This document shows, piece after piece, positions 13,175 through 64,000 of a stretch of 64,000 bases of DNA. The position numbers and the translations under genes are program-made. The stretch covers positions 1 to 64,000 of the forward strand of contig NIVC01000003.1 in assembly GCA_002269645.1 (NCBI GenBank), written 5' to 3'. Position 1 is the first letter of the stretch. Each line of letters starts with the position of its first letter. The notes beneath the pieces are model-generated. The model was not told the DNA's origin and made no database searches. It saw only the letters and a list, made by a program, of their open reading frames with translations. Origin of the DNA: Macrostomum lignano (taxonomy: Eukaryota).

Positions 13175-13720
<546 letters not shown>

Positions 13721-14559
13721 ACAGAGAGAACCGCTCAAGAAGAAAATATAAACTGGCCGTTTATTTTTGCATCGTCCTACTTAAAGTAGACTATGAGCTT
13801 GTCAAGCTGAATTATGCCTTTGACTTACAAATCGTGTTAAATTCTGTCTACTCAGCTCACACGATTTGAATAACTTTCTCCATATTTTAGTAAATAAATC
13901 AGGGAGAGAGGGCATCAGTGGACCCGAGTCTGGCAGAGTGGGAGCAGCTCCTGCTAAGCCAGCGAGACCCGGCTGCATGAGCAGCTCGATACGTCAGCTC
14001 CTTGGCCCTTGAGCATAAATAAATGCATCCTGGATATTAGCAGGATGGCTTTATTTTGATGTACGGCTATGCAGATGCAAACGAGAGGGCAGCTCCGTGG
14101 ATCTCATACTCAAGTCGGGAGAGTAAATCTCTTCATCAGTTTGAGCTCATAAAATATAAAATACAGGCACAGCAAGGGGGAGTGGGGATGCAGCTGCTTG
14201 CTTCTAAAAAACCAGTTTGGCCTCTCAAGCGCTCAGCGCGTTATGCAGCTCAGATCAGCAATTATGCATCTTTATCCATTGTTTCCCTTGCCCCTGATGG
14301 GGGCCACTGCTCAGCATTGATGGCAAGGCGTTGTATGGTCTGTGAGGCATGCATGCAGGCAGCGCATCAGTGGCTAAATGAATGCGGCAACAGAATAGAA
14401 ATCCCAAATAGGGATCTGGGATGGCAGTGCTATTCCGTAAAATGTCTGCTTCCGTGTGCACTTGTTGCCGTTGTAGAGGAAGAAGTTTTCTTTGTTTATT
14501 AACCCTGCCACAATGGGCAGATGTGCAACCGACAGCTCAGCCGCAGCTATTGCGCGTCG

Positions 14560-36400: not shown

Positions 36401-39400
36401 TAGAAATTTCGGAATTGTGATTTTTGCGGGCTTGTGATGGCGACCCGCTAGTGACTAAGCTAATAGCTGTCCCCCCTGTCCATCGCATTCCCCAGTACCG
36501 GGATTCCAACCCGGGCAAGCGGCTGCCGCAGATCGTGGGCCTGACCGCCAGTCCTGGCACCGGCCAAGCCTGCAAGCTCCAGGAGGCCACCGAGCATGTG
36601 CTGAAAATCTGCGCCAACCTGGACTGCCAGGAGCTCTGCACGGTGCGGCAGCATCTCCCCAGCCTGCGCACCAGCGTCTTCGACCCCAAGGACAGAATGC
36701 ACTGGGCCCCCGCCAAGCCCTTCACAGACTCCCTGCTGGGCGAGCTGGACCGCCTGATGCAGCGAGCGGAGGACCTGCTAGCCCATGAGGCCAAGCGATT
36801 CGAGTTTCTCATTCCGAGACCGCCTTCGGCTCGGGGCAGCTTCATTTACACCAACTACACTGGCATGCTGCACAAGATGCTCAAGGAGGAGACTCGGGAG
36901 CAGCCGTCCTGCATGCTGCACGCGGCCTGGAAGCACCTGCTGCGGTACAACTTTGCCCATCTCATCTGCAGCTTGTTCAGGTGCGCCGCTTGCATGTGCT
37001 GTGGGACGGTTACAGCTGGGGAGAGTCGGCGGGGAGGCTGGTAGGGTAGTGGGGAGGCTGATATGATAGATATGATATGATAGGGAGGCTAATAGGGTAG
37101 GTGAAGAGGCTAATAGGGTGGGTGAAGAGGCTAATATGGTGTGTGGGGAGGCTGATAGGGTGAGTGGGGAGGCTGGTATGGTGGGTGGGGAGGCTGATAT
37201 GGTGGGTGGGGAGGCTGATAGTGTAGGTGGGGAGGCTGATATCGTGGTGGGTGGGGCTGATAAGGTTGATGAGGAGGCTGATAGGACGCGACTTATTACT
37301 ACAGTCGGAGTCAAATCTCGTGTGTCTCATACGCGCCGCTTTGAAGTGGGTACAACACGATTGTCTGCCAAAATTACCGGCATTGTCACTTGAATGATTG
37401 TTTTAAAATGCTATAACTGGCAAAAGTTCTTTAAAACGCCAGGTGTTAACGTCTGTGCAGACGTCTGTGAGGATAAGAAAGTCAGCATTGTCATTTAAAA
37501 GATACCACAGCATATCACTTTCATTAGTTAAAAAAAAATCTTCTAACCGTATAACAATTCTTTCATAAGCAGATTTCATAGCAGTAGTGTGAAAACTCCT
37601 GAAAAAGCTCAAGTTTCACGAATCTATTTTTATAAAGTTCTAAAAATCGGTGGTAAAGTTTGAGTTAGTTACTCAACCCAGTTACTGCAAAGGCAGCTGT
37701 GTGATGCGGGAAGATAGTTTGAGCCCTGTCACCCGGGGCAGTCGCAATGAAAGTAACCCTACCCAAGACACGAATAGGGTCTAGTCAATGAAGGGCAGTT
37801 GCATCGAAAATTCTGACTAGAAGAAATCAAGGTCCCTACACGCCTTTGCACTCCTGACGAAAGCTTAACCAGCTTTCGAGATGCAATGGAGGCTAAGTAC
37901 GCACTTTTCACCAGCATTCCACACTTAACCAGCAAAAGCTTTTGACCAAAATCTGACCAGCCAAGCCAGTAACTGCTGATAAGTGTCTCGCAGCTTGTCA
38001 AATGCTGGTATTGTATTCCAAATTGACTAGCCACTCACCAGTGCGACGAATGCCCTGCTGGTGAGGAGGCTGATAGACTGGTGGGTGGGAAGGCTGATAG
38101 GCTGGTGGGAAGGCTGATAGGCTGGTGGGGAGGCAGGGTTGGGAGGCTGATAGGGTAGGTGGGTAGGCTGATAGGGTGGGTTGGGAGGCTGATAGGGTGG
38201 GTGGGGAGGCTGATAGGGTAGGTGGGTAGGCTGATAGGGTAGGTGGGGAGGCTGATAGGGTAGGTGGGGAGGTTGATAGGCTGGTAGGAAGGCTGATAGG
38301 CTGGTGGGAAGGCTGATAGGCTGGTAGGAAGGCTGATAGGCTGGTGGGAAGGCTGATAGGCTGGTGGGAAGGCTGATATGCTGGTAGGAAGGCTGATAGG
38401 CTGGTGGGAAGGCTGATAGGCTGGTGGGGAGGCAGGGTTGGGAGGCTGATAGGGTAGGTGGGTAGGCTGATAGGGTGGGTTGGGAGGCTGATAGGCTGGT
38501 GGGAAGGCTGATAGGCTGGTGGGAAGGCTGATAGGCTGGTAGGAAGGCTGATAGGCTGGTGGGAAGGCTGATAGGCTGGTGGGAAGGCTGATATGCTGGT
38601 AGGAAGGCTGATAGGCTGGTGGGAAGGCTGATAGGCTGGTGGGGAGGCAGGGTTGGGAGGCTGATAGGGTAGGTGGGTAGGCTGATAGGGTGGGTTGGGA
38701 GGCTGATAGGGTGGGTGGGGAGGCTGATAGGGTAGGTGGGTAGGCTGATAGGGTAGGTGGGGAGGCTGATAGGGTAGGTGGGGAGGTTGATAGGCTGGTA
38801 GGAAGGCTGATAGGCTGGTGGGAAGGCTGATAGGCTGGTAGGAAGGCTGATAGGCTGGTGGGAAGGCTGATAGGCTGGTGGGAAGGCTGATATGCTGGTG
38901 GGGAGGCAGGGTTGGGAGGCTGATAGGGTAGGTGGGTAGGCTGATAGGGTAGGTGGGTAGGCTGATAGGGTAGGTGGGAAGGCTGATAGGCTGGTGGGAA
39001 GGCTGATAGGCTGGTGGGAAGGCTGATAGGCTGGTGGGAAGGCTGATAGGCTGGTAGGAAGGCTGATAGGCTGGTGGGAAGGCTGATAGGCTGGTGGGAA
39101 GGCTGATAGGCTGGTAGGAAGGCTGATAGGCTGGTGGGAAGGCTGATAGGCTGGTGGGAAGGCTGATAGGCTGGTGGGAAGGCTGATAGGCTGGTGGGAA
39201 GGCTGATATGCTGGTGGGGAGGCAGGGTTGGGAGGCTGATAGGGTAGGTGGGTAGGCTGGTAGGGTGGGTTGGGAGGCTGATAGGGTGGGTGGGGAGGCT
39301 GATAGGCTGGTGGGGAGGCAGGGTTGGGAGGCTGATAGGATGGGTGGGGAGGCTGATAGGGTGGGTGGGGAGGCTGATAGGGTGGGTTGAGAGGCTGATA

Positions 39401-41926
39401 AATAGCGCCAATAGGTTTAATAGTGCAACAAGCCCTCTGGTTCCTTCCTATCCCGCAGGTCTGTGGACGCCCTTCGCTACCTCCGGGACGAGCTGGACCC
39501 GGAGTGTGGCCAGCCCACCTGCCGGCTGGACCGGGATCTGCGGGACGACCTTCGCAGCGCCCTGCCGAAAATGGACGCGTTCTGCCGGGAGCAGCCCGAG
39601 GCCGCAGGTTCGAGTCCCGCTCTGAAAATCTTGGCCGAAATCCTTCGCGGTCAGTTTGGCCAGAACGGGGACTCGCGGGTGATCATCTTTGTGCAGCAGC
39701 GCTGCTTCACCCGCTCCATCAAGGACTTCTTGGACAGCAGCCAGCCCGAGCTGGCCAACGCCGGGGTCAGGGCCGCCGTCATGACCGGTGCGAACGCCTG
39801 TGGCGCCGTTGGCGGCATCACGCAGAATGCGCAGACCGACACGCTGGCCGACTTTAGGCGGGGCGTGGCTAAGGTGGGGATTTGAGGGATTGTGGGTGGG
39901 ATTCGGGTGGTTGTTGGGTTATTCTAAGCTCAGGGGTTAGCAGAGTGGGCAGAATCGCGTTGCGCCAGGTTGCCCAGAGCCCACCTGAATTATTATTATT
40001 ATTATTACTATTATTATTATTATTACTATTATTATTATGAAACCCCGCAGATTCTCATCAGCACGAGCGTCAGCGAGGAGGGCCTGGACGTGCAAAAGTG
40101 CAACATGGTTGTTCGCTTCTGCCACGTCACCAACGAAATCGCCATGGTGCAGTCGAAGGGCCGCGGCCGGGCCGAGGGCAGCACGTATCACGTGATTGTG
40201 CCCGAGCAGCTGGGCTGGCTGTCCGACAAGGAGAAGACAAACAGGATGCGGGACGAGATGATGCAGGAGGCTGTGCTGCGGCTGAGCAAGATGGAGCAGC
40301 TGGAGTTCCAGGCCAAGGTGCTGCTCTGGTCTCTGTGCTCGTTTGGCTTTGTAGATATGCTTGCGTGTTGTGAGGCTGCTAGCGTCTTTGATGATTTTTA
40401 TGGGTTTGAAATTTCTCCTTTCTGTCTTTGATAATGTTAATGAGTCTTTGAGGATGTCAATGTGTCTTTGAGATTGTTAATGAGTCTTTGAGGATGTCAA
40501 TGTGTCTTTGAGGATGTTACTGTGTCTTTGAGGTTGTTAATATGTCTTTGAAGATGTTAATCTGTCTTTGAGGATGTTAATGTGTCTTTGAGGTTGTTAA
40601 TCTGTCTTTGAAGATGTTAATCTGTCTTTGAGGATGTTAATGTGTCTTTGAGGATGTCAATCTGTCTTTGACGATGTCAATCTGTCTTTGAGGATGTCAA
40701 TGTGTCTTTGAGGTTGTTAATCTGTCTTTGAAGATGTTAATCTGTCTTTGAGGATGTTAATGTGTCTTTGAGGATGTTAATGTGTCTTTGAGGATGTTTA
40801 TCTGTCTTTGAGGATGTTAATGTGTCTTTGAGGATGTTAATCTGTCTTTGAGGATGTCAATGTGTCTTTGAGGTTGTTAATCTGTCTTTGAGGATGTTAA
40901 TGTGTCTTTGAGGATGTTAATGTGTCTTTGAGGATGTTAATCTGTCTTTGAGGATGTTAATGTGTCTTTGAGGATGTTAATGTGTCTTTGAGGATGTTTA
41001 TCTGTCTTTGAGGATGTTAATGTGTCTTTGAGGATGTTAATCTGTCTTTGAGGATGTCAATGTGTCTTTGAGGAGGTTAATCTGTCTTTGAGGATGTCAA
41101 TGTGTCTTTGAGGATGTTAATGTGTCTTTGAAGATGTTAATCTGTCTTTGAGGATGTTAATCTGTCTTTGATTATGTTAGTGTGTCTTAGTATGTTAATG
41201 TGTCTTTGAGCACGTTACTTGTCTTTAAGGATGTTCATGTCTTTAAGGATGTTACTGTGTCTATTTTGAATTTTGTCTTGTGAGAGGCTGGTGTGTCTTT
41301 AGGCGCCTCAATGTGTCCCAATGTGTGCTAGCGTGTATGCGCCTTTAGAAACGCTGATTTCAGCTCTTGCGTCTTGACTCCATCAGGTGCAGAAACTGCA
41401 GTCCGACCAGGCCTGCCTGCGCAAGATTCAGCAGATCCAGAAGTCTGCCGCTTCCGCGAGGGGTGCTGCTGCGCCTCGGGGTTCAACGCCGCGGCCCCAC
41501 TACAACCTGCAGTGCGTCGGCTGCAACACCCTCGCTTGCACTTCGCTGGACCTCCGCATGGCCGACAAGCATTTCGTGGTGCTGCGCGACTCCCTGCTGA
41601 CCGACGGCCGCGCTCGTCTGCAGCCAAGGCCGGGCGGCCCCGCCGAAGACCTGCTGAACTCGCAGATTGTCTGCGCCAAGTGCCAGAAGCTGTGGGGCGG
41701 CCTGCGCAAGTTCAAGGACCTGGTGTTCCCCTGGCTGAAGGTGGAGCCGTTCAAGTTCGTCAACTCCTCCACTGGGGTGTCTGCCTTCGGAGTGAAGAAG
41801 TGGGCGGACACGAGCAAGTACTTCGGCACGCCCGAGCTTAGCAACAAGGAAATGCTCGACAAGGCGGAGGGCCTGCCTGAGGAGCTGTACATGCAGCTGC
41901 TGGCCGGCTCAGCGCCCGAGGAGTAG
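30470..41926 (+). CDS. RIG-I-like receptor (DDX58/IFIH1-like), ~1037 aa: CARD/death-fold-like N-terminus, SF2 helicase, Zn-binding CTD. Exons: 30470-30608, 31271-31432, 32465-32686, 33453-33590, 34727-35157, 35591-35905, 36496-36980, 39459-39873, 40051-40317, 41387-41926
   Basis: Q-motif RAYQLEL, motif I APTGSGKT, DECHH, GLTASPG, VIIFV, STSVSEEGLDV, QSKGRGR, CTD CVGC...CAKC. Exons total 3114 nt, in frame, all GT-AG. The start codon is uncertain. Confidence 0.93.
30640..31220. repeat. ~39-bp minisatellite, RLR intron 1
   Basis: gcagcagctctctgaatcactgtggcattggggagggta. Confidence 0.95.
31555..32435. repeat. 32/33-bp minisatellite, RLR intron 2
   Basis: ggactggtgagatacggtaggacatacaaagac and variants. 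Confidence 0.95.
32750..33130. repeat. Degenerate pyrimidine-rich repeat, RLR intron 3
   Basis: cccaatcccatctct units. Confidence 0.8.
33700..34264. repeat. 30-bp minisatellite, RLR intron 4
   Basis: gggttagagtacatgctttaggtaatgttt. Confidence 0.95.
34265..34604. mobile_element. ~340-bp hAT (Charlie-like) MITE
   Basis: TIRs CAGGGGTCGGCAAACT / AGTTTGCCGACCTCTG (15/16 match); ctttaggt on both sides, the right copy displaced by 3 nt. Confidence 0.8.
36297..36439. mobile_element. Small fold-back/MITE-like element in RLR intron 6
   Basis: catcacaagcccgcaaaatcac...ccgaaa and tttcggaattgtgatttttgcgggcttgtgatg form a ~33-bp imperfect inverted repeat. Confidence 0.55.
37040..37270. repeat. G-rich (ggaggctgataggg)-type repeat, RLR intron 7
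   Basis: Visible. Confidence 0.8.
38060..39400. repeat. 1.3-kb G-rich 16-20-bp minisatellite (ggaaggctgataggctggtg)n with higher-order blocks
   Basis: Visible; same family as 37040-37270. Confidence 0.95.
39988..40038. repeat. (TAT)n microsatellite directly upstream of an RLR acceptor
   Basis: Visible. Confidence 0.9.
40430..41200. repeat. 20-bp minisatellite (tgtctttgaggatgttaatg)n, RLR intron 9
   Basis: Visible. Confidence 0.95.
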
Positions 41927-44215: not shown

Positions 44216-45184
44216 CTACTTCCGCCGTCTGTGCGACAGCACGCCCGCTCCGACGCGGCGGCAGTGGGCGGTGAACTCCTCCGGGGTGATGAACATCGGC
44301 GGGCAGGCAGCCCGGGTGCAGGCGGCGCTGCGGTCCGGCAGGCAGAAGCAGCGGTTGCAGCCGTCGAAGAAGGCCAGTTCGGCGGTGCGCCGGCCCCTGC
44401 ACAGGCTGTCGGCGTCCAGGCAGGTCGTGTAGAAGCGCGACCGGTCCTTCTTCTCCTGGAAGCGGCGCTGCGCCTCCCGGCAGTAGAGAGCGGCGGCCTC
44501 GTTGTCGGGCTCCGGCTGCGGGCACTCGCGGCTGTCGGCCACGCGGGCCAGGCCGTCCGACACGCAGGTGACGTTCCGACAGCCGTCGTTGTACTGGAAG
44601 CCCGGCAGGAACTCCTCGCAGATGCGGCTGTGCCGCAGCGCCGGGCACTCGAACTCGTCCTCCTCGAGCGCGCCGGCTCGCGGCTCCTCCGACTGCTGCT
44701 TTTCCGAGCCCTCCGACTCCAACGCCAATGCCACGAAGCGGCAGTACGGGCCGGTCGGGTCGGTCACCGGGCATTCCATGCGGGTCCTGGCGTGGCCGCC
44801 GGCCGCCAGACAGCGGACCCGGTTGCAGCCGTCGCTGAAGGCGAAGCCGGCGCCGCGGCGGGTACAGACGGAGTCGGCATCGATGTTGTAGCAAGTGAAG
44901 GGGCCGAGGCGGCTCCAGACGGCGCGGGAGAGGCTCTCGCAGAGGTTCCGCTCGCCCCGGCTGCTGGGCTCCGGGCAGGCCAGGAGGGTGGTGCTCGCCA
45001 GACCGCCATCGTTGCAGGTGACGGTGTTGCAGCCATCGTTGTAGCTGAAGCCGGACTCCGTGGCGTTGCAGACGAGTCCGGGATCGAGGTCCGGACAGCG
45101 CAGGGCCGGCTCATCCTTCTCGGCCTGACTACTCGAAACGGCAGTGCACAGCAGGCCCACCGTGATGAGGAAGAGAAGCTGCAT
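44216..45184 (-). CDS. Secreted pacifastin-like multi-repeat protease inhibitor A (322 aa, 4 repeats, intronless)
   Basis: Signal MQLLFLITVGLLCTAVSSSQA; last repeat canonical FFDGCNRCFCLPDRSAACTRAAC; three DGCNxVxC variants. Confidence 0.85.
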   Translation of the reverse strand: MQLLFLITVGLLCTAVSSSQAEKDEPALRCPDLDPGLVCNATESGFSYNDGCNTVTCNDGGLASTTLLACPEPSSRGERNLCESLSRAVWSRLGPFTCYNIDADSVCTRRGAGFAFSDGCNRVRCLAAGGHARTRMECPVTDPTGPYCRFVALALESEGSEKQQSEEPRAGALEEDEFECPALRHSRICEEFLPGFQYNDGCRNVTCVSDGLARVADSRECPQPEPDNEAAALYCREAQRRFQEKKDRSRFYTTCLDADSLCRGRRTAELAFFDGCNRCFCLPDRSAACTRAACPPMFITPEEFTAHCRRVGAGVLSHRRRK

Positions 45185-46314: not shown

Positions 46315-47442
46315 CTAGTTGATGATGCCGGCCTTGCGCCGCACGCACTCTGCCCTGAACTCCTCCTCAGTGCTGAAGTAGGGCTGACAAGCCCGCCGGG
46401 TGCAGCCTGCCCGATTGACGCCCATGCAGAAGCAATAGTTGCAGCCGTCGAAGAACGATTTCCGCTCCCCGGGCTGCTTGCAGACGTCCGCAGCCGTCAG
46501 GCAGCTCGTGCGCCGCTTTGACTCTCGGCGCTTCGCCTCCATGGCCGTCTTGGCGTCGCTGCACCTGCGAGCGGCCTCCGCCTCGCTGCCCACCCGACAG
46601 AGGCGGGTGGTGCTGACACCACGGCCCGGCGAGGAGCAGTACACTTCGTTGCATCCGTCGTTGTAGCGAAAGCCGTTCATCTCATTCGTGCAGATTCGCG
46701 ACATGGCCAGCTCCGGACAGTCGAGGTCCCGGTTGCCCTCAGGAGCAGTTCGGCGGGCTTTGCTGACCACCCACTGGCAGAGGGCGCTCTCGGAACTGGC
46801 TGGCGGGCAGCCCATGAGCGTGCTGGTCCACATGCCGCTCTCTCCGCACTCGATCGTGTTGCAGCCGTCGCTGAATCGGTACCCGATGCCCTCCATCCGG
46901 CAGACCTCCGTCTTGTTGATCCCCGAGCAGGTCCGCGGCTCCATCCGTTCGACCAGGCGCTCCATGCGCCGCTCGCACCTGGCGATCTGGGTAGGGTCTC
47001 CCGGCGACGGGCAGAACATCAACGTGGACGTGCCGCTGCCGTTGCCGTCGCAGACCACCGGGTTGCAGCCGTCGCTGTAAGTGAAGCCGGCACCGGCGGT
47101 GGCGCAGACGGCCTGCATGGACAGCGCCGGGCAGGTTACCCTGTCCGCATCGTCCAGTCGCAGCTGTATGTTCTCACGGATCGTCTGGCAGCGCTGTCGC
47201 TCCTCGGCTGTGGCGGCCGGCGGGCAGGCCATCAGCGTGGAGACCAGCGAGCCGCTACCGTCGCAGGTCACCGTGTTGCAGCCGTCATTGAAGCTGAAAT
47301 CGGCTGGCGCGAGCTTGCAGATCGACTGCTGCCAGCTGTAGCCGCAGCCGATGCCGTCGGACGAGTCTTCCTGGGATTTGGCGATCAGCGGAGCCGCTGT
47401 GGCCAAGAATAGCGCAATGAGCAGTCGGCAGGGATGCTGCAT
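46315..47442 (-). CDS. Secreted pacifastin-like multi-repeat protease inhibitor B (375 aa, 5 repeats, intronless), tandem paralogue of A
   Basis: Signal MQHPCRLLIALFLATAAPLIA; last repeat FFDGCNYCFCMGVNRAGCTRRAC; four DGCNxVxC...STxxxC variants. Confidence 0.85.
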   Translation of the reverse strand: MQHPCRLLIALFLATAAPLIAKSQEDSSDGIGCGYSWQQSICKLAPADFSFNDGCNTVTCDGSGSLVSTLMACPPAATAEERQRCQTIRENIQLRLDDADRVTCPALSMQAVCATAGAGFTYSDGCNPVVCDGNGSGTSTLMFCPSPGDPTQIARCERRMERLVERMEPRTCSGINKTEVCRMEGIGYRFSDGCNTIECGESGMWTSTLMGCPPASSESALCQWVVSKARRTAPEGNRDLDCPELAMSRICTNEMNGFRYNDGCNEVYCSSPGRGVSTTRLCRVGSEAEAARRCSDAKTAMEAKRRESKRRTSCLTAADVCKQPGERKSFFDGCNYCFCMGVNRAGCTRRACQPYFSTEEEFRAECVRRKAGIIN

Positions 47443-50560: not shown

Positions 50561-50834
50561 TGATCCCCTGATCATCTCCGCAGTCTCGGGTTGCAGTGGC
50601 TGGTCCAGCTGTTGGTGGGCATCAGTATCAAGCAGTCAGTTGGTTGTAAGCCGAAAATTTATGAGTGCATGATGATTACTGCGTTTCCTTTGTCCTGAGG
50701 CGCTCTGGTCTACAGTGATCTGCTAGCCTGAAAGTTCTCAGTCAGGATGTCAGCGCAGGAATAAACTCAAGCGCTGAGAAGGATACAATTGGTTTAAGAG
50801 GGTTTTATCGTTGTTTTAGAGGGTCGAATTCATT

Positions 50835-51445
50835 GCGCGCCGCCGGTCCCGCAGTGAAGCAAGCCCCAGTACAGTTGGTTTGCCGCCGGTCCCGCAGTGA
50901 AGCAAGCCCCAGTACAGTTGGTTTGCCGCCGGTCCCGCAGTGAAGCAAGCCCCAGTACAGTTGCTTTGCCGCCGGTCCCGCAGTGAAGCAAGCCCCAGTA
51001 CAGTTGCTTTGCCGCCGGTCCCGCAGTGAAGCAAGCCCCAGTACAGTTGGTTTGCCGCCGGTCCCGCAGTGAAGCAAGCCCCAGTACAGTTGCTTTGCCG
51101 CCGGTCCCGCAGTGAAGCAAGCCCCAGTACAGTTGCTTTGCCGCCGGTCCCGCAGTGAAGCAAGCCCCAGTACAGTTGGTTTGCCGCCGGTCCCGCAGTG
51201 AAGCAAGCCCCAGTACAGTTGGTTTGCCGCCGGTCCCGCAGTGAAGCAAGCCCCAGTACTGTTGGTTTGCCGCCGGTTCCGCAGTGAAGCAAGCCCCAGT
51301 ACAGTTGGTTTGCCGCCGGTCCCGCAGTGAAGCAAGCCCCAGTACTGTTGGTTTGCCGCCGGTTCCGCAGTGAAGCAAGCCCCAGTACTGTTGCTTTGCC
51401 GCCGGTCCCGCAGTGAAGCAAGCCCCAGTACTGTTGATTTGCCGA
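50835..51445. repeat. 43-bp minisatellite (gccgccggtcccgcagtgaagcaagccccagtacagttggttt)n
   Basis: Visible. Confidence 0.95.
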
Positions 51446-51989
51446 GAGTTTGAGGCCACTGACAAGCTTTGGACAGAGGACCAGGTTTCAGAGCCACTGC
51501 TGAAAATGAGCGGAGCGGGTTGCTCAACCGGATGCTGGGTGAGCCATCCAGAAGCGGCCTGTTGCGTTCAGGACCACCAGAGGCGTCCTCCGAGTCCGGG
51601 GAGAGCAGGCGGCGTTTAGTGAAGTGAAGCCGCCAGCCGCCAGAAGAAACAGATTGACGGCTGAAATAACACTGCCGCACGGTTTTTAGCGAAAAGATTC
51701 AGTGCAAACAGTGCGAATAAAGTGTAAATATGAGCCAAGAAGCAGTTTAGTTGAGTCACCCGGGCTGGCTGCAATGCTCCCGGCTCATGCTTGCAATGAG
51801 TCCGACTACATAAGGCTTCCCAGGAAGCTGGCGGGCTGCAAGCGTGTCTTCAAGCCTCCCCCGGAGTTGCTAGCAGGTGGGGGCTGAAGCGTCTTGGAGC
51901 AGCTTAGCCCAGGCTGGGGAGTTCAAAAACTTCCGTCTCTGCCTCCTCTTTGGCTCATTTGCGTTTCCTTGGCTCTGTATGCGGATGAA

Positions 51990-52711
<722 letters not shown>

Positions 52712-53021
52712 GGCAAAGGCTAATAAATATTGTAATTTTTCTCAGGCTTAACCGGGTAAGACTGGCAGCAGTCGCTGAATCCTGTTGGACAGCTGCCGCT
52801 AGAATGGATCCAGTTGCGAGGCTCATTAAAAATATTTATTAAAAACACTTCTACTTTCAAAGTAAAATAGCAAACAGGTTACGTTCGCGGTTCTGAGTCA
52901 GCAAATAAATACGAGCGTAGAACTGCCACCAGTCTGCAGTCTTGAGTACAGGAAAATATAATGAATTGCAAAAGTTACAGAAATAGCATTAGAGAGGCGG
53001 CCTTGGCGGTGCCGACGCGCC

Positions 53022-56000
53022 TCAGAGCTCGCAGACGAGGCTGCCCTCGGCATCGTCCTCCACCGAGTCCTCAATAAATGCTCGATTCGTCGCGCCCTCC
53101 TCGATGACCACGGCGATCGCCGTATCGTCGCAGAATGACAGCACCTTCTTCTTGACGTTGGCGGACCCGTTGGTGCCGGCGCTGCGGCTGAGGATCGACT
53201 TCCGCGCCGCGGTGCCGTTGCTGCGCTGCGCCGGTCCCAGCGCCGACATCTCCAGAGACTCGCTGGACATAAAGATGCGAAACGGCGCCGCCTCGGAGCC
53301 GCTGCCGGTCAGCCGCGCTTTCTGCAGGCTGCGCGGCAGCAGCTTCTGCGCCTCCGTGGCGGCCGGCCGCGTTGATGGCAGCGGCGGCGTCGGCGGCCGG
53401 ACCTCGTCGACGACTGTGACAGTGACGCGATCTGGCGAGGCCGCCGCCGCCGCCGCCGCCGATTCGTCGGAGTCTCTGGCAGCGGCGTGCAGGCGATAGC
53501 GGCGGCTGCCCAGGGCGGGGGCGGGCGGCGGCGAGCGGGCCGTGCCGCGGAGGCGCTGCGCCCCCCAGGACGGGTTCGCCTCCTCGTCGGAGCCCGCGTC
53601 CGCATCCGCGTCGGCATCCGCTTCGACGTCAGACGGGATCAGCGCGTCCCCAGCCTCCAGGAGCATGGAATCCTCAGCCTCATCGCTGACGCTCGAGATG
53701 CAGTAGGTGGTGACGAATTTGCCGTCCTGTGGGTGGGGAGGGGGGCAGCTCGGTGAGCCTGCGGTGTCCCCACTGTGACGTCACGCCATTTGCCACCTGT
53801 TTTATAATTCTTGTTGTCTGTCTTCTCATCTAATCTTTTCTTAATTGATGACGATTGCGAATCCGACTTGTTCTCGCGAATTTCACGTTTCTGGAATTCT
53901 CCTCGCTAAGCCCAGCTCCTCCACCACGCCATTGTTCGGATAAAAGTCCTCTCCCCCCCCCTCTCTCTCTCTCTCCCTCTCTCCCTGCGCACTGCCATGC
54001 GCATTTTTTTCATAATGGAGTGGGCGCCCCACTAGGGACTGAATTTTATGGTCCGGAGTCTGGCCAGCCATGCCAACCCCAGCCTGTGCTGCATCTGTCG
54101 GAGCCAAAATTACCCCAAATTAATTTGCAGGTCTAATTAAATATCTCTGAGACTCGCTGACGTGAAATTCGATTACAGCCGGCCGCCCCACCCGCCATTC
54201 TGCTCCGGCAATCGATCAGGAGCTGCGGCCGGGGCCTGCCGGACTCAAATATTGACACCGCAGCGCCCGCCACCAACTCAAGTGAGGGCTGGGGACGGGC
54301 TGCGTGCAGTGAAACAAAAGGCGAGCCCGCCTGGGAGCATTGAGGGATTCTGAAACCGATAGATGCTTATTTGAAGGATAAGGTAGCCCTCTAATCATAG
54401 TCTTACTGGAAGCATTGCCCAGAAATTTTCGACAATATTAAAGCTGACCATCTTTCCCTAAATAGGATTTTACCCAAGTAAAGTAGGGAAATTACCAGCC
54501 TACTCACAGGTGCAACTCTGAGCTGGCCTCACCTGCCCAACTGTCAATTGTGCATTCTGCAAGCCTAATTAATCACTGGGTAGAACAATTCTGCTCTTTG
54601 GAAGTTGAGCATTTTGCTCTGAAGACAGTTCCGTCATTATCCTGATTGATGGGGGGGAGCTGGCTTTGAAGTGGACTCGGTAGAGCTATTAATAAAAACT
54701 CAGGCGGATGCCTGCTGCTTCAAGCCACATTAGAAACATAGCAGGTGCCAGCACTGGCCACTGAACACTGCCACCAATGCCTCAGCGACCTCGAATTTTT
54801 TGCACTCACCGAAGCCGGGCAGAGTCGCTTCTCAAAGTGTAACTTTTGCTGCTCCTTTTTCTTTTTCTTTTTCTTCCTGCCGCTGCTTTTTTCGCCGGCT
54901 GCCTCCAAGCCCGGCGGTGGCGAGGTGCCCGAAGCTGCCGCCGCCGCTGTTGCCGCCGCCGTTGCTGCCGCATTTGCAGCCGCCGCAGCGGTTGCCGCCG
55001 CTGCCGCCGCCACCTTCGCCGCTGCGGTGGCGGACTTTGGCTCCGGCTGTGGAATCGGGGGCGGAGTTTCTGCCTGATCCGCCGCGGCACTCTCGGCGGC
55101 CTCCCCGTCGGCTCCGTTGCCCATTTCCTGCGCCGCCCCCTCAGCTGCCTCCATCGCCGCCTCCAACTTCGCGGCCTCGTCGGTTGGCTGCTCTGGCTCT
55201 GATGGCGCTACAGTCTCCGGCTCTTCGTTCGCATCAGTTTCGCCCGCGAGTGCCCGTCGCACCGTCTCGGACGCGTGCACCTGGTGCTTCTCGGCGCTCA
55301 GCGCCAGCTGCAGGGCCACATGGAGCGCGCCGCCGCCAGCGAAGAGCGCCGGGACGCCGGAAGTGATGACGCCGATGGACACTGGGCCGCAGTGCAGCCC
55401 TGCGCAGGCGGCCATCGGCGGTGACGCTACACCGCCGCCATTGCCGCAGTCGGCGTCGTCATTGACATGGACTCCGCCGCATCGCACTAGGCGGATTAGG
55501 TGCTCAGCCAGGCGCAGCAGGTCGCGGACGCTGCGTCGAGAGGACTTTCGCCGCAGGCCGCATAGGAACAGGAAGAGGTCGCCGAACGCGTGGCGCATGT
55601 GGACGTCCTTGTAGCTGGCGGCGATGCTGTTGAATACGTGGTAGTGGGCGTTGGAGACGGCGTTCACCTCAAAGGGCCGGTTGACGTCGCTGAGGCAGAC
55701 CAGGCCATCCAGGCGCACGAAGAGCACCCCAGCCAGCCGCTTGTACTCTGGCTGGAACGGCTGGTCGTTGAGCAATCGGCTGGCGTAGAACTCGGGCAGG
55801 TTGGAGCGGATCATGGCCTGGTAGGAGTCTCGCTGCTCCTCCATGGCCGAGTTTAATGCCAGCATCTCATTCTCCAGCAGCAGGTGCTCGGACTCCAGGC
55901 TGTCAAACATGCTCTGCATCATGTTCTTGCGCCTGGGGAAGCACTTCTTGACCAGCTTGGTGAGGTTCTCGGCGCTGGGCCGGACCCTGGGATCGTCGCT

Positions 56001-59000
56001 CCAGGAGGTTTCCAGCACCTGGCGGAAGGTGATGGGGATGTCCTGAAGCTGGTCAGGCCGCAGCGAGTTCTTCACAATGGCCGTGAGCAGGTCCCGGGCG
56101 TTGCTCAGGTCCTCCCTGTAGCTGGCGAAGGGAATGCTCCGGGTGAAGATCTCGTAGAAGATCACAGCGCAGGAGTAAATGTCGGAGCTCTGGTCCGGCG
56201 GCCACTGCAGCTCGGAGCGGAGGATCTCGGGTGCAACGTAGATGTCGAAGTCCAGGACCTGCTGCTCGCTGGATACTCGCCCAGTATGGCGTCGCGGACG
56301 TACTGGATGGCCGGCCGGGCGTCTTTGACGGCCCGGGTGGTGGTTGAATAGTACATGAGGTACTCCCAGTCCGCTAGCTTCACCGTCCACTTGCTGTCCA
56401 TGAGGCAGGCGCTGGTCCGCAGCATGCCGTGCACGATGCCCTGGCTGTGCAGGTAGCTGACAGCCTGGCAGATGTCCATCACTATGGAGCCTTTGACCGC
56501 GGGCGCCAGGTCCAGCTTGGGGTTGTGCACAACCTTGCTGAGCGGGCCGCGCTCGCAGTACTCTGACACAACAAAGAAGTCCCGCTCGACCTGGGTCAGG
56601 CCGTGGAACGCTGCCACGTTGTTGTGGTGGACGCGGTCCATCATCCACTGCAGCAGCTTCTTAGTGGAGATGTCGAGCCTCTCTTGCGATCGCTGCGTCT
56701 GCAGCAGTCGCACGCCGACGCTGGCCTCCCGGAACTTGCCCGGCCACTGCAGCACCGTGTCCGCGTCGTAATCCTCCTCGCTCTCCGCTTCATCCTCCGT
56801 CATCTGCGTGCCGACGGAGATCGTGTCGGAATCGTCCATGCGGAAGCTGCGCATTGATCGGTTGCGGCCGCGGCTGCGCGGAGCGAAGAACATGATCTCC
56901 TCGATCGGCACCAGCCACAGGTCCTGCGCGGGCCAAGTTTTGAGGAGGGGGAGAGTTGCTGTCTGGCACCTGCGCGACTTTTTGATGCAGAAGTAAGTAT
57001 CAACTGCCTTTGTGGCGTGCCCCACGGCTCATATGTTATACAAACTACTTTCACTCTGCGTAAAGAGCCCAGCCCAAATCTCCTTGGTCTCTCCTGCTCC
57101 CTTGCTGTTGAGCTGTGAGTTGCTTTGCTGCCTGAAGGCTTGTCTAAAGACTGACGGATGAACTCTCAGTGCCAGTCAAGAAAACCTGGATGGAGACGCG
57201 GCACACGAGCAGGCACGAAAAATTCAAGGATCCGGAGGCTTTCTCTACAACCTGAGGAATAAGAATGTAAAAATACAGTGTGTTGCTGAAGCTTCAGAAT
57301 TGGCTCACCTGGTTGAGCAGCTTCCACTGCACGTAGCTCTGCCTGGCAATGTACGCCCCGAGGCCGCCGGCCACCAGCAGCCCGACGCCAACGGAGGCGA
57401 GCGTCGGCGCCATCCAGGACGAGTTCCGGCTCTCCGCTTCCGTCTGCTCGCGGCGCCGCTTCTCCAGCCAGAGCTCGCGCAGGAGCCGCCCACCGCAAGC
57501 GGCCTTGTCGAGCACCTGCGTCCGGACCTTCTGGCGGACAGCGTTGCTGAGCGGCACGAAATTGTTGGCGCGGATAATGCTGGCCGGCTCCGGGTCCGTG
57601 TAGAACCAGTTCAGGAAGCCATAGAACTCGGTGGCTTCATCGCACCTGGAGTTCGGGCGGAGTCTGGCTAGTGCTGAGTGCCCTATCTATTTAGTACCTT
57701 TCGGCCGTCTGAATTTTTGTTTTATAGCCCTCTAACATTAACCAGTCCTCTCTTGTCCACTCTACAGTCCCCTCTTGTCTACTCTACAGTCCTCTCTTGT
57801 CTACTCTACAGTCCACTCTATAGTTCTCTCTTGTCCACTCTACAGTCCTCTCTTGTCCACTCTACAGTCCACTCTACAGTCCTCTCTTGTCCACTCTACA
57901 GTCCACTCTACAGTCCTCTCTTGTCCACTCTACAGTCCACTCTACAGTCCTCTCTTGTCCACTCTACAGTCCACTCTACAGTCCTCTCTTGTCCACTCTA
58001 CAGTCCTCTCTTGTCCACTCTACAGTCCTTTCTTGTCCTCCCGACAGTCCTCTATTGTCCACTCTACAGTCCTTTCTTGTCCTCTCGACAGTCCTCTATT
58101 GTCCACTCTACAGTCCTTTCTTGTCCTCTCGACAGTCCTCTATTGTCCACTCTACAGTCCTCTCTTGTCCTCTCGACAGTCCTCTCTTGTCCACTCTACA
58201 GTCCTCTCTTGTCCAGTCTACAGTCCTCTCTTGTCCTCTCTACAGTCCTCTCTTGTCCTCAAGACAGTCCTCTCTTGTCCACTCTACAGTCCTCTCTTGT
58301 CCTCTCGACAGTCCTCTCTTGTCCTCTCGACAGTCCTCTCTTGTCCACTCTACAGTCCTCTCTTGTCCACTCGACAGTCCTCTCTTGTCCACTCTACAGT
58401 CCTTTCTTGTCCACTCTACAGTCCTCTCTTTGCCCCATCTACACGCATGTCGCTCTTGTGTCCTTTCTATATGCGAAACATGAAAAGCCTTGGCCTGCAA
58501 TCAATTTAAATAATTTGTGCATCTTTTATTGCTTTTAGCCTGGAAGCACAGCAATTATGAAAATTAAGCGTCGGGCTGTCCAATAAAACCAATCCACGAC
58601 ATTAGAATGAAAGAATCAGCAGAGACTGCTTTTCCATTGTTATCAGACCTCACTCGCACAAAGGGCTGCTGAGTGAGGTCTGTTTGGTTAGTCAGTTTTA
58701 AGGTTCAGTTTTAAGAGGTTATCGCCCCGTGCAAATGCTGCAGCCGTCGACAGCTACATAACCCCACAGTGGATATGCAACGATTGAGAGGGACTGGCCT
58801 TCATAAGCACACAGCATCATGTCCAATAAAGAGGCTTCAGTTCACATACGATCCCCATTGCGTCTGCTTATCCTCTGGGGCTGAATGAGACTTCTCAATG
58901 ATTCTACTCTCATTGCCGGTCCAGTAGTCCTTGTTCTACTCTCATTGCCGGTCCAGTAGTCCTTGTTCTACTCTCATTGCCGGTCCAGTAGTCCTTGTTC

Positions 59001-60167
59001 TACTCTCATTGCCGGTCCAGTAGTCCTTGTTCTACTCTCATTGCCGGTCCAGTAGTCCTTGTTCTACTCTCATTGCTGGTCCAGTAGTCCTTGTTCTACT
59101 CTCATTGCCGGTCCAGTAGTCCTTGTTCTACTCTCATTGCCGGTCCAGTAGTCCTTGTTCTACTCATTGACTGTACAATAGTCCTTATTCTACTCATTGC
59201 CTGTACAATCGTCCTTGTTCTACTCGTTACATGTACAATCGTCCTTATTCTACTCGTTACATGTACAATCGTCCTTATTCTACTCGTTACATGTACAATC
59301 GTCCTTATTCTACTCGTTACATGTACAATCGTCCTTATTCTACTCGTTACATGTACAATAGTCCTTGCTGTTATCTAGGAAACAGACTTCCTGCTAGTAT
59401 TTTCTAGGAAAAACCCCTGTAGCTGTGTGAACCCAGATCCTCTTTAAGCTTTGCTGCCTTTAGCTCTAATCGACAAACAAACTTAGGCTGCAGGAAACAA
59501 TCGTGTTTATATAAAACAAGAGAAACCGTCCCATAAGACTCACCTCGCAGTCATGTTCATCTTGATGATGAAGTAGGTGTAGGTGGCGATTGGGTAGGCG
59601 TCCGGGTTCTGGGCGTCAATGAGGTGTCCAGTTAGCCGGGAGTCCATTGTGTTAGCGTAGAAGTCCATGGCCGCCTGCACGGAGGCCGGTTGCGAGGCGT
59701 CCACGAAGCTTCCGTTGGCGTTCTCAATCAGCGCGAGGCTCACGAGGCTCTCATCGTTCAGTCTGAGATCCGAGGCCGATATGTAGGCGATGGAGTTTCG
59801 CAGGCTGCTGAGTAGGGCGGTGAGCCCATCGGTACCCTGGGCGAAGAACTCAACAACTGAATTGTTCCAGTCCGGGTGTCTCCAGGTGACTTTGTTGAGC
59901 TCGCGCTCGAACTCGCCGTACTTGGCCTTCCACTCGGCTGAGAAGGAGCTCAGAGCTTGGGTGAAGACTGCGGTGGAGCCCGACTTGTCCATGCGAGCCA
60001 TGGGCCGGATGGGGTTGTGGGGCAGACTCGAGTTCGGGTTCGCGTTAACAATGCCCGGGCTGTCCCAGTGCGAAGTTTTCCCCATGTAGATGTCGACCAG
60101 AGTCTGGCGGGTCAGGCGCAGCCGTGTTGCACCGAAGGACGGCGGGTGATAGGCCACCGCCACGGCG
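53022..60167 (-). CDS. Receptor guanylyl-cyclase-like protein with PstS-type phosphate-binding ectodomain, TM helix, kinase-homology domain, degenerate cyclase domain and long tail. 5' end not found. Exons: 60167-59544, 57663-57309, 56923-54810 (1-nt deletion near 56271), 53726-53022
   Basis: PstS-like LTRQTLVDIYMGKTSHWD..NPNSSLP..ARMDKSGST..AYPIATYTY..FLNWFY; TM APTLASVGVGLLVAGGLGAYIA; KHD HNNVAAFHG/EYCERGPL/HGMLRTSACLMDSKW/YVAPEIL/SDIYS; cyclase-like AFGD, GLHCGPV, HFEKR..|DGKFVTTY. All junctions are GT-AG and phase-compatible. Confidence 0.88.
57775..58430. repeat. ~22-bp minisatellite (cagtcctctcttgtccactcta)n
   Basis: Visible; intronic. Confidence 0.93.
58905..59370. repeat. 32-bp tandem repeat grading into a 30-bp variant
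   Basis: ttctactctcattgccggtccagtagtccttg changing to tactcgttacatgtacaatcgtccttattc. Confidence 0.9.
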
Positions 60168-60254
60168 CTGTGGGAGTTCGTTGGCTTTCATTTAGCTTCT
60201 CAGCACCTCGAGGCCTCTCAACTGGCTATGTTCGGGTAAGCCTCACAAGGCTAC

Positions 60255-60705
60255 TCAAGCCCCCTGACACACTCCAGGGCTACTCAAGCCCCCTGACACA
60301 CTCCAGGGCTACTCAAGCCCCCTGACACACTCTAGGGCTACTCAAGCCCCCCTGACACGCTCCAGGGCTACTCAAGCCCCCCTGACACGCTCCAGGGCTA
60401 CTCAAGCCCCCTGACACACTCCAGGGCTACTCAAGCGTCCCTGACACACTCCAGGGCTACTCAAGCGTCCCTGACACGCTCCAGGGCTACTCAAGCCCCC
60501 CTGACACGCTCCAGGGCTACTCAAGCCCCCTGACACACTCCAGGGCTACTCAAGCGTCCCTGACACACTCCAGGGCTACTCAAGCGTCCCTGACACACTC
60601 CAGGGCTACTCAAGCGTCCCTGACACACTCCAGGGCTACTCAAGCGTCCCTGACACACTCCAGGGCTACTCAAGCGCCTCTGACACACTCCAGGGCTACT
60701 CAAGC
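60255..60705. repeat. ~28-30-bp minisatellite (ctgacacactccagggctactcaagcccc)n
   Basis: Visible. Confidence 0.93.
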
Positions 60706-60709
60706 CTGA

Positions 60710-60915
60710 ATCACACCATATCTGTGTCACACCATATCTGTATCACACCATGCCTGTATCACACCATGCCTGCATCACACCATGCCTGCATCACACCATA
60801 TCTGTATCACACCATGTCTGTATCACACCATGCCTGCATCACGCCATGCCTGCATCACGCCATGCCTGTATCACGCCATGTCTGTATCACGCCATGCCTG
60901 CATCACGCCATGTCT
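60710..60915. repeat. 16-bp minisatellite (tcacaccatgcctgta)n
   Basis: Visible; abuts the previous array. Confidence 0.9.
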
Positions 60916-61459
60916 GTCTCCAGAGCGGCTTGTGAATGCAAAAGCAGACCTAGCGGTCGGTCCTTGCAACCAGTCCCGTGCATTGCAGTAGTCACGGGAG
61001 TTTCTCGAGAGTCTGTAGGCACGGATAAGCTGAGATCTCAGCAAACTGTAAACTTGTGCATAATTCAGCAAAAGTACACAATGAAAGCACACACTCGCAA
61101 AAGGCATATCTGAGCAATTCATGCATCTGTAAATATTAGCATGGATCTTCTACACTAAGGCAGGCTATCGCTCTGACTGGTCTCGTACTTTAAATAGCGG
61201 CGATCGCTGGTCTCTACACTTGTCCTGCCGATGCTGGATGGCAATTTTTTTTGTGAGGCTACTGTGAGGCGAGGGCAGGCCGGTTACTGCTGGCGGAATT
61301 AAACCCTTCACGGCCCATTAATTAATGAGTTGTTGCAGAGACTGGCGCGGCAGAGGGTGGCCATCAGGCCAGAGCTCAGGCATACGGCCCAGCCTAATAG
61401 CGGCTCAGGGTTTCAGCTCAATTGGCTATTTGAACAGAGCTTACGGTGCCAAAGCTGGG

Positions 61460-61862
61460 GGCGGAGCGGAGGGCGGGAGGCGCCGTCATGAGCCAGCAGC
61501 CCCATGGCGGCGGAGCGGAGGGCGGGAGGCGCCGTCATGAGCCAGCAGCCCCATGGCGGCGGAGCGGAGGGCGGGAGGCGCCGTCATGAGCCAGCAGCCC
61601 ATGGCGGCGGAGCGGAGGGCGGGAGGCGCCGTCATGAGCCAGCAGCCCCATGGCGGCGGAGCGGAGGGCGGGAGGCGCCGTCATGAGCCAGCAGCCCCAT
61701 GGCGGCGGAGCGGAGGGCGGGAGGCGCCGTCATGAGCCAGCAGCCCCATGGCGGCGGAGCGGAGGACGGGAGGCGCCGTCATGAGCCAGCAGCCCCATGG
61801 CGGCGGAGCGGAGGGCGGGAGGCGCCGTCATGAGCCAGCAGCCCCATGGCGGCGGAGCGGAG
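61460..61862. repeat. 49-bp GC-rich minisatellite
   Basis: ggcggcggagcggagggcgggaggcgccgtcatgagccagcagccccat, about eight copies. Confidence 0.95.
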
Positions 61863-62269
61863 GGCAAAACAATGAAGTGGAAAAAAAAGACTCAGCAAGG
61901 TGGGCTGGAAAAAAACAAACTTTTTGTAGCAGCGGATCAGCGGCTAAGTTTCAATTAACAGAGTCCTCAGAGCTGCCGCTGACGTGGGGAACTGCTGCAT
62001 GGGCGGATCTCGACATGCACAAGTTTCCTGTTTCGCTAAGAGTTAAAAAGTCAGCTCTGCTTTCTGTCAAAGTCTGATTCGCGATTCTGCCATGCTTATT
62101 TCGGAAATCATTGTGAGCCAGTCGGGTGACAAATCTTTCCTAGTCTTAACTCTGACTTAGAGTGAGCGATGCGAGCTGTTTGATGAGCTGAGGGCTTTCA
62201 TCTTTGTTGGAGTTCTCGAGCCCAACTGGCTTGCTTTGCCTGGCTATTCAATTACTGAACTGCCTGTAT

Positions 62270-62830
62270 GCCTACCTGCCTACCCACCTGCCTACCCACC
62301 TGCCTACCCACCTGCCTACCCACCTGCCTACCCACCTGCCTACCCACCTGCCTACCCACCTGCCTACCTAACTACCTACCCACCTACCTACCTAACTACC
62401 TACCCACCTACCTACCTAACTACCTACCCACCTACCTACCTAACTACCTACCCACCTACCTACCTAACTACCTACCCACCTACCTACCTAACTACCTACC
62501 CACCTACCTACCTAACTACCTACCCACCTACCTACCCACCTACCTACCTAACTACCTACCCACCTACCTAACTACCTACCCACCTACCAACCTACCTACC
62601 CACCTACCCACCCATCTACCTACCCACCTATTTACGTGCCTACCTACCTACCTACCTACCTACCTACCTACCTACCTACCTACCTACCTACCTATCTACC
62701 TACCGATCAACCTACCAAGTACCTACCCACCAATCTACCCACCTAACTGCCTACCCACCAATTCACGCACCTACCCACCTATCTACCTATCCACTTACCC
62801 ACGTACCTACCTAACTACCTACCCACCCAC
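62270..62830. repeat. (CCTA)n-derived degenerate microsatellite
   Basis: Visible. Confidence 0.92.
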
Positions 62831-63489
62831 ATCTGACCTAAAAGTCACCAGTTCCTGTTTTATTTATCAATCATATTCTCCACCCTTCATCGTTTTTCTG
62901 TCGTTATATAGATATTAATTTCCAGCCTCAGGACCACCAGAGACGAGTCCTTTTTCTGGATCAAATCCAATTTTCTGAAATACAACTACAAACGGAACTA
63001 AAAAGAGACAGGCGCCACCTCAAGCTAGCAGAGCCGAGAGCCCAGCCGCGGAAAAGTATGCTCAAGAAAAAACAACATGGCTTGTGGCCTGTTTTCAGGC
63101 TGAGATGGAGCAGCCCGCCTCTCCCTTCTCATTCTTCAATGTTGCTTTTACGAGCTAAAAAGCAGCCTAAAATCCCGCGCTGCTACTTCCAGATCCCGGC
63201 ATGAAAGCAGCACTTTTGCCTGCTTTGGGTCTTAGACCTGCCACTTTTGTTTTTGCAGCCACAGCACAAAAGTCAAAGTGGATTGCTTGCTCTGACGGGC
63301 TGCACCGGCACAATGAGTTTGTTTTGTATACTTTTTATACAATCCGACCAAACACTGACTCGCGAGCCTGCAGCAGGATAGAACTGACAGAAAGGAAATC
63401 TTCAACAATATCTGCAGATAAAAACTTGTCACAGATTCCAATGAATCTATGCGATAGATGGGTTAGATCTGTAGACTAACAACAACAAA

Positions 63490-63990
63490 ATGCTCAGACT
63501 AGCAATCCATTCTACTCCACTGCATTTAGGCTAGACTAGCAATCCATTCTACTCCAGTGCATTTAGGCTAGACTAGCAATCCATTCTACTCCAGTGCATT
63601 TAGGCTAGACTAGCAATCCATTCTACTCCAGTGCATGTAGGCTAGACTAGCAATCCATTCTACTCCAGTGCATTTAGGCTAGACTAGCAATCCATTCTAC
63701 TCCAGTGCATGTAGGCTAGACTAGCAATCCATTCTACTCCAGTGCATGTAGGCTAGACTAGCAATCCATTCTACTACAGTGCATGTAGGCTAGACTAGCA
63801 ATCCATTCTACTCCAGTGCATGTAGGCTAGACTAGCAATCCATTCTACTCCAGTGCATGTAGGCTAGACTAGCAATCCATTCTACTCCAGTGCATTTAGG
63901 CTAGACTAGCAATCCATTCTACTCCAGTGCATGTAGGCTAGACTAGCAATCCATTCTACTCCAGTGCTTGTAGGCTAAACTAGCAATCCC
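63490..63990. repeat. 37-bp minisatellite (gctagactagcaatccattctactccagtgcatgtag)n
   Basis: Visible. Confidence 0.95.
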
Positions 63991-64000
63991 TCGCAGAGTC

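Follow-up and report, generated by a model that had tools for sequence, protein, structure and literature searches.

Receptor guanylyl cyclases are textbook ligand-to-cGMP (cyclic GMP) converters with ANF-receptor ectodomains. In their best-matching representatives here, GC-A/NPR1 and GC-C/GUCY2C, a single transmembrane (TM) helix connects this ectodomain to a pseudokinase (the kinase-homology domain, KHD), a signalling helix and a C-terminal class III cyclase-homology domain (CHD). A gene with a comparable layout is found in Macrostomum lignano, a tractable flatworm in which RNA interference and transgenesis are in use. It lies on the minus strand of the first 64,000 nucleotides of contig NIVC01000003.1 (assembly GCA_002269645.1), a stretch referred to below as the window, and its exon chain runs from 60187 to 54810. 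According to Pfam, translation and tblastn, this gene encodes in one polypeptide a PstS-like (PBP_like_2) ectodomain, one TM helix, a pseudokinase, a signalling helix and a CHD, which is the architecture of a receptor guanylyl cyclase, save for a one-base frame break at 56268–56272. GC-A and GC-C are its best matches in both sequence and fold, but they differ in their ANF_receptor ectodomain, whereas the window protein carries a PstS-type domain with the type II periplasmic binding fold. The fold of class III cyclases is preserved in its CHD, from which the residues at six of the seven catalytic positions and the terminal β-hairpin have been lost.

The active sites of class III cyclases are shared between the two subunits of a head-to-tail dimer, one of which contributes two aspartates and the other the purine-specifying and transition-state residues. 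Partly stripped subunits that leave a non-catalytic pseudo-site are found in two such dimers, the C1/C2 domains of adenylyl cyclase and the alpha/beta subunits of soluble guanylyl cyclase (sGC). In these, each subunit keeps a complementary half, so that one active site is formed, whereas the window protein lacks residues of both halves and would not be expected to complement a partner. Another likeness is offered by the clearance receptor NPR-C/NPR3 and by pseudoenzyme receptors, as members of the cyclase-receptor family that bind ligand without making cGMP, a behaviour also predicted for the window protein. NPR-C has lost its whole intracellular pseudokinase and cyclase, whereas the window protein retains both as folded, conserved pseudo-domains. 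The ectodomain is homologous to bacterial PstS (E. coli PBP, M. tuberculosis PstS-1), with conservation of the Arg-x-Asp-x-Ser-Gly-Thr phosphate loop; the bacterial proteins are soluble or lipoprotein parts of an ABC importer, whereas the window domain is fused to a eukaryotic transmembrane receptor.

Catalytic residues and fold of the cyclase-homology domain

Membership of the CHD in the class III nucleotidyl cyclases is supported by its match to Pfam PF00211 (Guanylate_cyc; E=5.6e-6), whose 26.5 bits exceed the gathering score of 21.9. The match covers profile positions 9–156 of 183 and residues 306–468 of the open reading frame (ORF), corresponding to window positions 55245–55733. A preliminary description of this DNA had assigned the longer interval 54810–55760 to the cyclase. 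Only about 55242–55745 is cyclase-like; the stretch 54810–55241 encodes a low-complexity C-terminal tail, which passes from acidic to Ala-rich to Lys-rich sequence and to which no orthologue aligns. A possible GTGAGT donor is located past the tail at 54804–54809, and an in-frame stop codon at 54720–54722. The C-terminal β-hairpin of canonical cyclases (..RGE..KGKG...YWL) is missing from the CHD, in which HQVHASETVRRALAG is followed by acidic and Ala-rich sequence instead.

Structure prediction is consistent with this assignment. AlphaFold2 (AF2) run on a shallow alignment of six sequences gave an unusable model (pLDDT 44), which was replaced by one based on 20 family CHDs, with pLDDT 88 and pTM 0.77. 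The latter model shows a long N-terminal helix followed by the expected order of strands and helices, including the β-α-β-β-α-β core of the cyclase fold, while the terminal hairpin is absent and confidence falls after residue 232. The helix (residues 2–46, pLDDT >90) belongs to the signalling helix or coiled coil that joins the pseudokinase to the CHD at 55770–55928 on the minus strand, and it aligns to the signalling helices of GC-A and sGC. When the model is compared with the PDB by Foldseek, only class III cyclases appear on top, among them sGC alpha1 (8hbe_A, E=5.6e-14), and the intracellular and cyclase domains of GC-A (9bcs, 9bcv) superimpose with TM-scores of 0.76–0.78 on the target and a root-mean-square deviation of 2.3 Å. 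Because the alignment given to AF2 includes canonical cyclases, the model indicates compatibility with the fold and is not independent proof of it.

Catalytic competence was assessed at seven positions, namely the two metal-binding aspartates, the Glu/Arg/Cys triad that specifies the purine and the Asn/Arg pair that stabilises the transition state, which read DEDRCNR in canonical enzymes. The relevant segments of the window protein are FVRLDGL (55701–55721), MRHAFGD (55578–55598) and PALFAGGGALHVALQ (55308–55352), all on the minus strand. By manual alignment, the preliminary description had derived them from FSDIVGF, with the first metal Asp replaced by Arg, from KVETIGD, with Glu replaced by His and the second Asp kept, and from MPRYCLFGDTVNTASR, which becomes VPALFAGGGALHVALQ with loss of Arg, Cys, Asn and the catalytic Arg. 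An alignment to NPR1 and GC-C, run as a check, reproduces these assignments column for column; in the third motif, Arg is replaced by Ala, Cys by Phe, Asn by His and Arg by Gln. In a phmmer search of PDB sequences, human NPR1/GC-A is the top match (E=3.5e-7, query residues 25–223 against 805–990); further alignments were made with MAFFT against vertebrate GC-C and with L-INS-i on 47 sequences, and each of the three motifs occupies the same columns in all three.

The CHD thus reads RHDAFHQ, with six of the seven canonical residues replaced and the second metal Asp alone kept. Among the residues needed by a competent cyclase, the first metal-binding aspartate is Arg (in FVRLDGL) and the second is present (in MRHAFGD), the guanine-specifying triad is His, Ala and Phe, and the transition-state pair is His and Gln. 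Judged by these residues, the protein is predicted to form neither cGMP nor cyclic AMP (cAMP). The kinase-homology domain, which is recognised by Pfam kinase profiles, lacks the catalytic aspartates of both HRD and DFG: the former is HGM (56405–56437; read as IVHGMLRTS) and the latter ADW (56360–56383; read as KLADWEY). The proposal that the gene encodes a receptor with a pseudokinase and a pseudocyclase is therefore borne out at the level of residues.

It could be argued that the CHD is still an enzyme that uses unconventional residues, either the Asp two positions downstream in FVRLDGL together with the retained second Asp, or other nucleotidyl-transfer chemistry. One metal Asp is indeed kept, another Asp stands at +2 of the lost one, and Glu is found at the first metal position in several degenerate relatives. 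However, Arg rather than Asp occupies that position in all alignments, in which the flanking Phe and Gly also line up, and the purine-specifying and both transition-state residues are gone as well. The catalytic positions also vary freely among subfamily members, which is unexpected of an active site, and residual catalysis of this kind is highly improbable.

A catalytically dead CHD raises the question of how such a subunit would behave in a dimer. The initial suggestion of an obligate heterodimer partner is disfavoured by the two-half-site mechanism, as the lost residues (the first Asp, together with Glu, Arg, Cys, Asn and the second Arg) come from both half-sites. Because elements of both halves are lost, the subunit should neither form a homodimer active site nor complete one with an intact partner. 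A role as a scaffold or dimerisation module, or a dominant-negative role, is possible.

Canonical and degenerate members of the receptor family

The window gene belongs to a protostome-wide family of receptor guanylyl cyclases with PstS-type ectodomains, and within it to a branch with a degenerate CHD that is marked by the motifs PIE[DE]I.F and LQWPGK[WFY]. Word-indexed homologue searches recovered few members of this family (21, 7 and 8 matches), and an exhaustive profile search was needed, in which a profile of the window protein and two orthologues was scored against 1.84 billion representatives. This search returned 947 proteins at E<1e-30, dozens of which are matched over nearly the whole profile, from the ectodomain to the CHD. 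Pfam identifies PBP_like_2, Pkinase and Guanylate_cyc together in nine of the matches, with both kinds of CHD included.

Tabulation of the seven catalytic positions in 44 CHDs separates these two kinds. All seven residues (DEDRCNR) are intact in about 13 canonical representatives, whose PF00211 scores exceed 200 bits and among which are proteins of Priapulus caudatus (XP_014672517.1), Owenia fusiformis (CAH1793096.1) and Trichinella pseudospiralis (KRZ27753.1). About 27 retain zero to three of the seven residues, with named representatives from Haliotis, Argopecten, Ostrea, Mercenaria and Tubulanus, and three more are intermediate, with four or five. A truncated Tegillarca model has replacements at the catalytic positions that it covers, and proteins of Lineus and Liolophura, from outside the table, have the same domain architecture. 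The degenerate members come from molluscs, nemerteans and this flatworm, and the dead-cyclase state is family-wide and conserved rather than peculiar to the window gene. Which residues stand in place of the canonical ones varies between lineages, as is expected once catalysis is no longer under selection.

By Pfam, the canonical proteins of Priapulus, Owenia and Trichinella, which are known from automatic annotation only, share the four-domain architecture of the window protein, and they align with it over nearly the full length at 27–28% identity. They differ from it in keeping DEDRCNR and the high PF00211 score, in the absence of LQWPGK[WFY], and in a pseudokinase that is less conserved and a cyclase that is far more so. 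The best BLAST matches of the window protein are degenerate members, namely a Tubulanus protein (32%), the Ostrea-type P0027 and the Haliotis P0022. The motif LQWPGK[WFY] at the start of the KHD is present in the window (VLQWPGKF) and in 12 representatives with a scorable CHD, all of them degenerate (zero to three of seven), and in none of the 13 canonical ones. If the degenerate LQWPGKW-type subfamily is defined by this motif and by at most three of the seven residues, the window gene falls within it, with VLQWPGKF and one of seven. Neighbour-joining (NJ) trees built on the ectodomain, TM helix and KHD, leaving the CHD aside, also place the window gene among degenerate members; because bootstrap support in these trees is weak, the co-occurrence of motifs was used for the assignment instead.

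An orthologue in ENA ERZ25072999 (L002, 8001–9773 and 11742–12380) has its CHD on a separate exon 2 kb downstream. This CHD reaches 80 bits on PF00211, yet it reads G, E, E, R, V, H and Q at the seven positions, and it shares with the window protein His and Gln in place of the transition-state Asn and Arg. Canonical and degenerate receptors can also be found together: ENA assembly ERZ24900295 holds the canonical P0040 and the degenerate P0035, both on long eukaryotic contigs. When M. lignano proteins, though not the genome, were looked up for paralogues, such as the active one predicted in the preliminary description, the only matches were P0002 (99%) and P0183 (with frame switches), both from the same gene, and no second cyclase locus appeared when the whole 64 kb was searched by tblastn with GC-C and family members. 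In databases, the family is known by automatically assigned names alone, such as 'atrial natriuretic peptide receptor-like'. No description of PstS-ectodomain cyclases or of a pseudo-cyclase branch was found in full texts, a scope outside which most subscription journals fall, so that an earlier description is possible; the degenerate dead-cyclase subfamily is apparently undescribed.

The two kinds differ in where conservation is concentrated. Mean pairwise identity among LQWPGKW-type members is 0.39 for the ectodomain, 0.48 for the KHD, 0.35 for the helix and 0.18 for the CHD, as against 0.41, 0.31, 0.50 and 0.64 among canonical members. The identity of the CHD is lowered and that of the KHD raised in the degenerate kind, and the constraint has therefore moved from the cyclase to the pseudokinase. 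Between the degenerate proteins of two abalones, Haliotis cracherodii and H. rufescens, there are 13 differences in 448 residues of the ectodomain and TM helix, one in 290 of the KHD and none in 192 of the CHD, so that even the dead domain is still constrained. Degenerate CHDs have thus changed rapidly between distant lineages, yet remain conserved in closely related species, and the pseudokinases of this branch show stronger conservation than those of the catalytic one. The structural glycines and the H.G...G motif of the CHD are nearly invariant across the family.

Exons, ectodomain and integrity of the gene copy

The exon structure of the gene can be followed from the ectodomain inwards, with all exons on the minus strand. 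The exon at 59543–60187 encodes the C-terminal two-thirds of the ectodomain, which matches Pfam PF12849 (PBP_like_2) with 48.4 bits and the solved structure of PstS-1, 1pc3, with a phmmer E-value of 2.6e-20. In the latter alignment, RSDGSGDT of PstS-1 is paired with RMDKSGST, so that the phosphate-binding loop of the C-terminal lobe (ARMDKSGST, 59972–59998) is kept. Pfam finds no ANF_receptor domain (PF01094) in the ectodomain. On this homology, the ligand is probably phosphate or a similar oxyanion. The N-terminal lobe, with the phosphate ligands GASFP, SGSG and SD, occurs in relatives of full length, P0022 and P0026 among them; neither tblastn nor an ORF scan of 60188–64000 found the corresponding 5' exons in that interval.

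The end of the ectodomain, the TM helix (57345–57413) and the start of the juxtamembrane segment are encoded by the exon at 57309–57645, which is followed by a GTGAGC donor at 57308. The intron between this exon and the ectodomain exon contains a minisatellite array (57678–58538). A single long exon, running from 56923 downward, carries the juxtamembrane segment, KHD, signalling helix, CHD and tail. Its first part (56273–56923) encodes the juxtamembrane VPIEEIMFF, the motif VLQWPGKF (56732–56755) and the pseudokinase N-lobe up to ..QYVRDAILGEY (Pfam PK_Tyr_Ser-Thr, E=6.8e-18), and the C-lobe, from ..DIYVAPEILR.. to ..AENLTKLVKK, follows at 55944–56267 (Pkinase, E=1.4e-9); tblastn supports both parts. 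Two of the exons, including that of the ectodomain, show 100% identity to P0002, a UniRef protein of M. lignano ('PBP_domain domain-containing protein'), and a third shows 98% over its coding part. At the splice junctions, MNMTAR|CDEATEF and WKLLNQ|DLWLVP, the translation also agrees with this protein.

The two lobes of the pseudokinase are separated by a frame shift. The sequence ..LGEY ends at 56273 and EQQVLDF.. starts at 56267, and by translation and tblastn the homology to orthologues lies in frame 1 up to GEY and in another frame from EQQVLDFDIYVAPE onward. Five bases (56268–56272) stand between them where orthologues need a multiple of three, in a stretch that is coding in those orthologues, and one base is therefore missing. 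A 35-nt GT..AG mini-intron (56268–56302), which would restore the frame, is ruled out by the homology of QYVRDAILGEY to coding sequence in Tegillarca, Haliotis and other orthologues. A second M. lignano model of the same gene, P0183 (UniRef A0A1I8FU75), contains at least five frame switches in a stretch of about 200 residues and matches the window peptide exactly in between, which suggests indel errors in the source assemblies of M. lignano. The break is plausibly an assembly artefact, although it could be a real frameshift in one of many genome duplicates.

The frame break bears on whether this copy is functional at all. In the duplicate-rich genome of M. lignano, the locus might be a recently inactivated duplicate, whose degenerate cyclase motifs would be part of a general decay. 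The missing base in the pseudokinase, the replacement of the terminal CHD hairpin by low-complexity sequence and the 5' ectodomain exons not located in the window would fit such a pseudogene. Against this, the catalytic losses are common to the whole subfamily across phyla and are therefore far older than any recent decay or frameshift. Apart from the break, the exons can be read through for about 3.5 kb, with an ORF of 642 codons, the family-invariant residues of the ectodomain and KHD are kept, and the pattern of frame switches in P0183 is typical of long-read indel errors rather than of evolution. It is improbable that this copy is a pseudogene.

Receptor output and other features of the window

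The best explanation overall, and in our judgement a probable one, is that the gene encodes a PstS-ectodomain receptor whose catalytically dead but fold-keeping CHD serves a non-catalytic output. The CHD and signalling helix would persist as a dimerisation and scaffold module and keep a pair of receptor chains in register. Binding of a ligand by the ectodomain, probably phosphate or a similar oxyanion, would be relayed to an output that most likely consists of protein–protein interaction through the conserved pseudokinase, which is the preferred reading; sequestration of a catalytic cyclase partner is a second possible output.

Several observations weigh against this explanation. The loss of catalysis is deduced from residues, and the AF2 model of the fold leans on an alignment containing canonical cyclases. 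The CHD of the window gene is also the weakest cyclase match in the family, with 26.5 bits as compared with 50–100 for other degenerate members. The frame break at 56268–56272 and the missing last hairpin mean that this copy could be a decaying duplicate, and neither tblastn nor the ORF scan of 60188–64000 turned up the N-terminal third of the ectodomain in the window. Finally, the deep nodes of the NJ trees have bootstrap values below 35% and the position of the window gene is unstable, so that the trees do not establish whether the degenerate branch arose only once.

A related explanation, which partly overlaps with the one above, assigns the receptor the part of a dominant-negative or modulatory partner. 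The dead CHD would heterodimerise with an intact canonical PstS-type paralogue or another receptor guanylyl cyclase, destroy both composite sites and so tune cGMP. This would agree with the established action of class III cyclases as head-to-tail dimers with shared sites, with the existence of both canonical and degenerate PstS-type cyclases, with the co-occurrence of P0040 and P0035 in one assembly, and with the fact that the signalling helix and the CHD's structural glycines have both been retained. However, the protein searches revealed no canonical PstS-type cyclase for M. lignano, whose genome they did not cover. In addition, the degenerate CHDs are only about 20% identical to canonical ones, which makes the compatibility of the interface doubtful, and the raised conservation of the pseudokinase suggests that the output lies there. 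Dominant-negative or modulatory action is rather unlikely, and a non-catalytic output through the pseudokinase is preferred.

In a wider and tentative proposal, which we consider less likely than not, a protostome receptor lineage possesses a true PstS-type sensor of phosphate or oxyanions, and one large branch of it, which includes the window gene, gave up cGMP synthesis and signals by way of a hyper-conserved pseudokinase, the dead cyclase serving as a dimerisation scaffold. If true, this would define a new non-catalytic class of receptors and provide a candidate direct receptor for extracellular phosphate in animals. The receptor-cyclase chassis is here combined with a bacterial-type phosphate-binding ectodomain, and a large spiralian branch has a cyclase that is structurally kept and catalytically stripped. 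The active and dead paralogues offer a natural series for the study of non-catalytic roles of the pseudokinase and CHD, and the family as a whole supplies candidates for the sensing of extracellular phosphate or related anions in invertebrates.

The window as a whole is eukaryotic in character and rich in mini- and microsatellites. Repeated Pacifastin_I protease-inhibitor domains (PF05375) occur in two secreted, Cys-rich proteins encoded by neighbouring ORFs at 44216–45184 (E=2.6e-13) and 46315–47442 (E=6.8e-21) on the minus strand. On the plus strand, the ORF at 41387–41926, possibly together with 36424–37044, encodes a RIG-I C-terminal regulatory domain (PF11648, E=4.5e-15) and probably represents one exon of a gene for a RIG-I-like helicase that extends over several kb. 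Three tandem paralogous ORFs of 170–233 amino acids on the minus strand (3125–3826, 3901–4482 and 5883–6395) share the block ..VAQVVFDVS.N.K.LN..NWF...R.VSS.PY...K.G.NYFS.AGH.A.KRTFF..; they have no Pfam match and represent an unannotated local gene family. Tetranucleotide arrays of the (GACA/GTCT)n type, about 0.7 kb and 1 kb in length, occupy 13085–13789 and 51870–52842 and generate artificial long ORFs (TDRQ.. / LSVC..) on both strands. Besides the intronic array described above, minisatellite arrays with repetitive pseudo-ORFs are present at 17967–19574, 21805–22692, 31481–32474, 38035–39411, 50805–51680, 60300–60750, 61400–61900 and 62236–62918.

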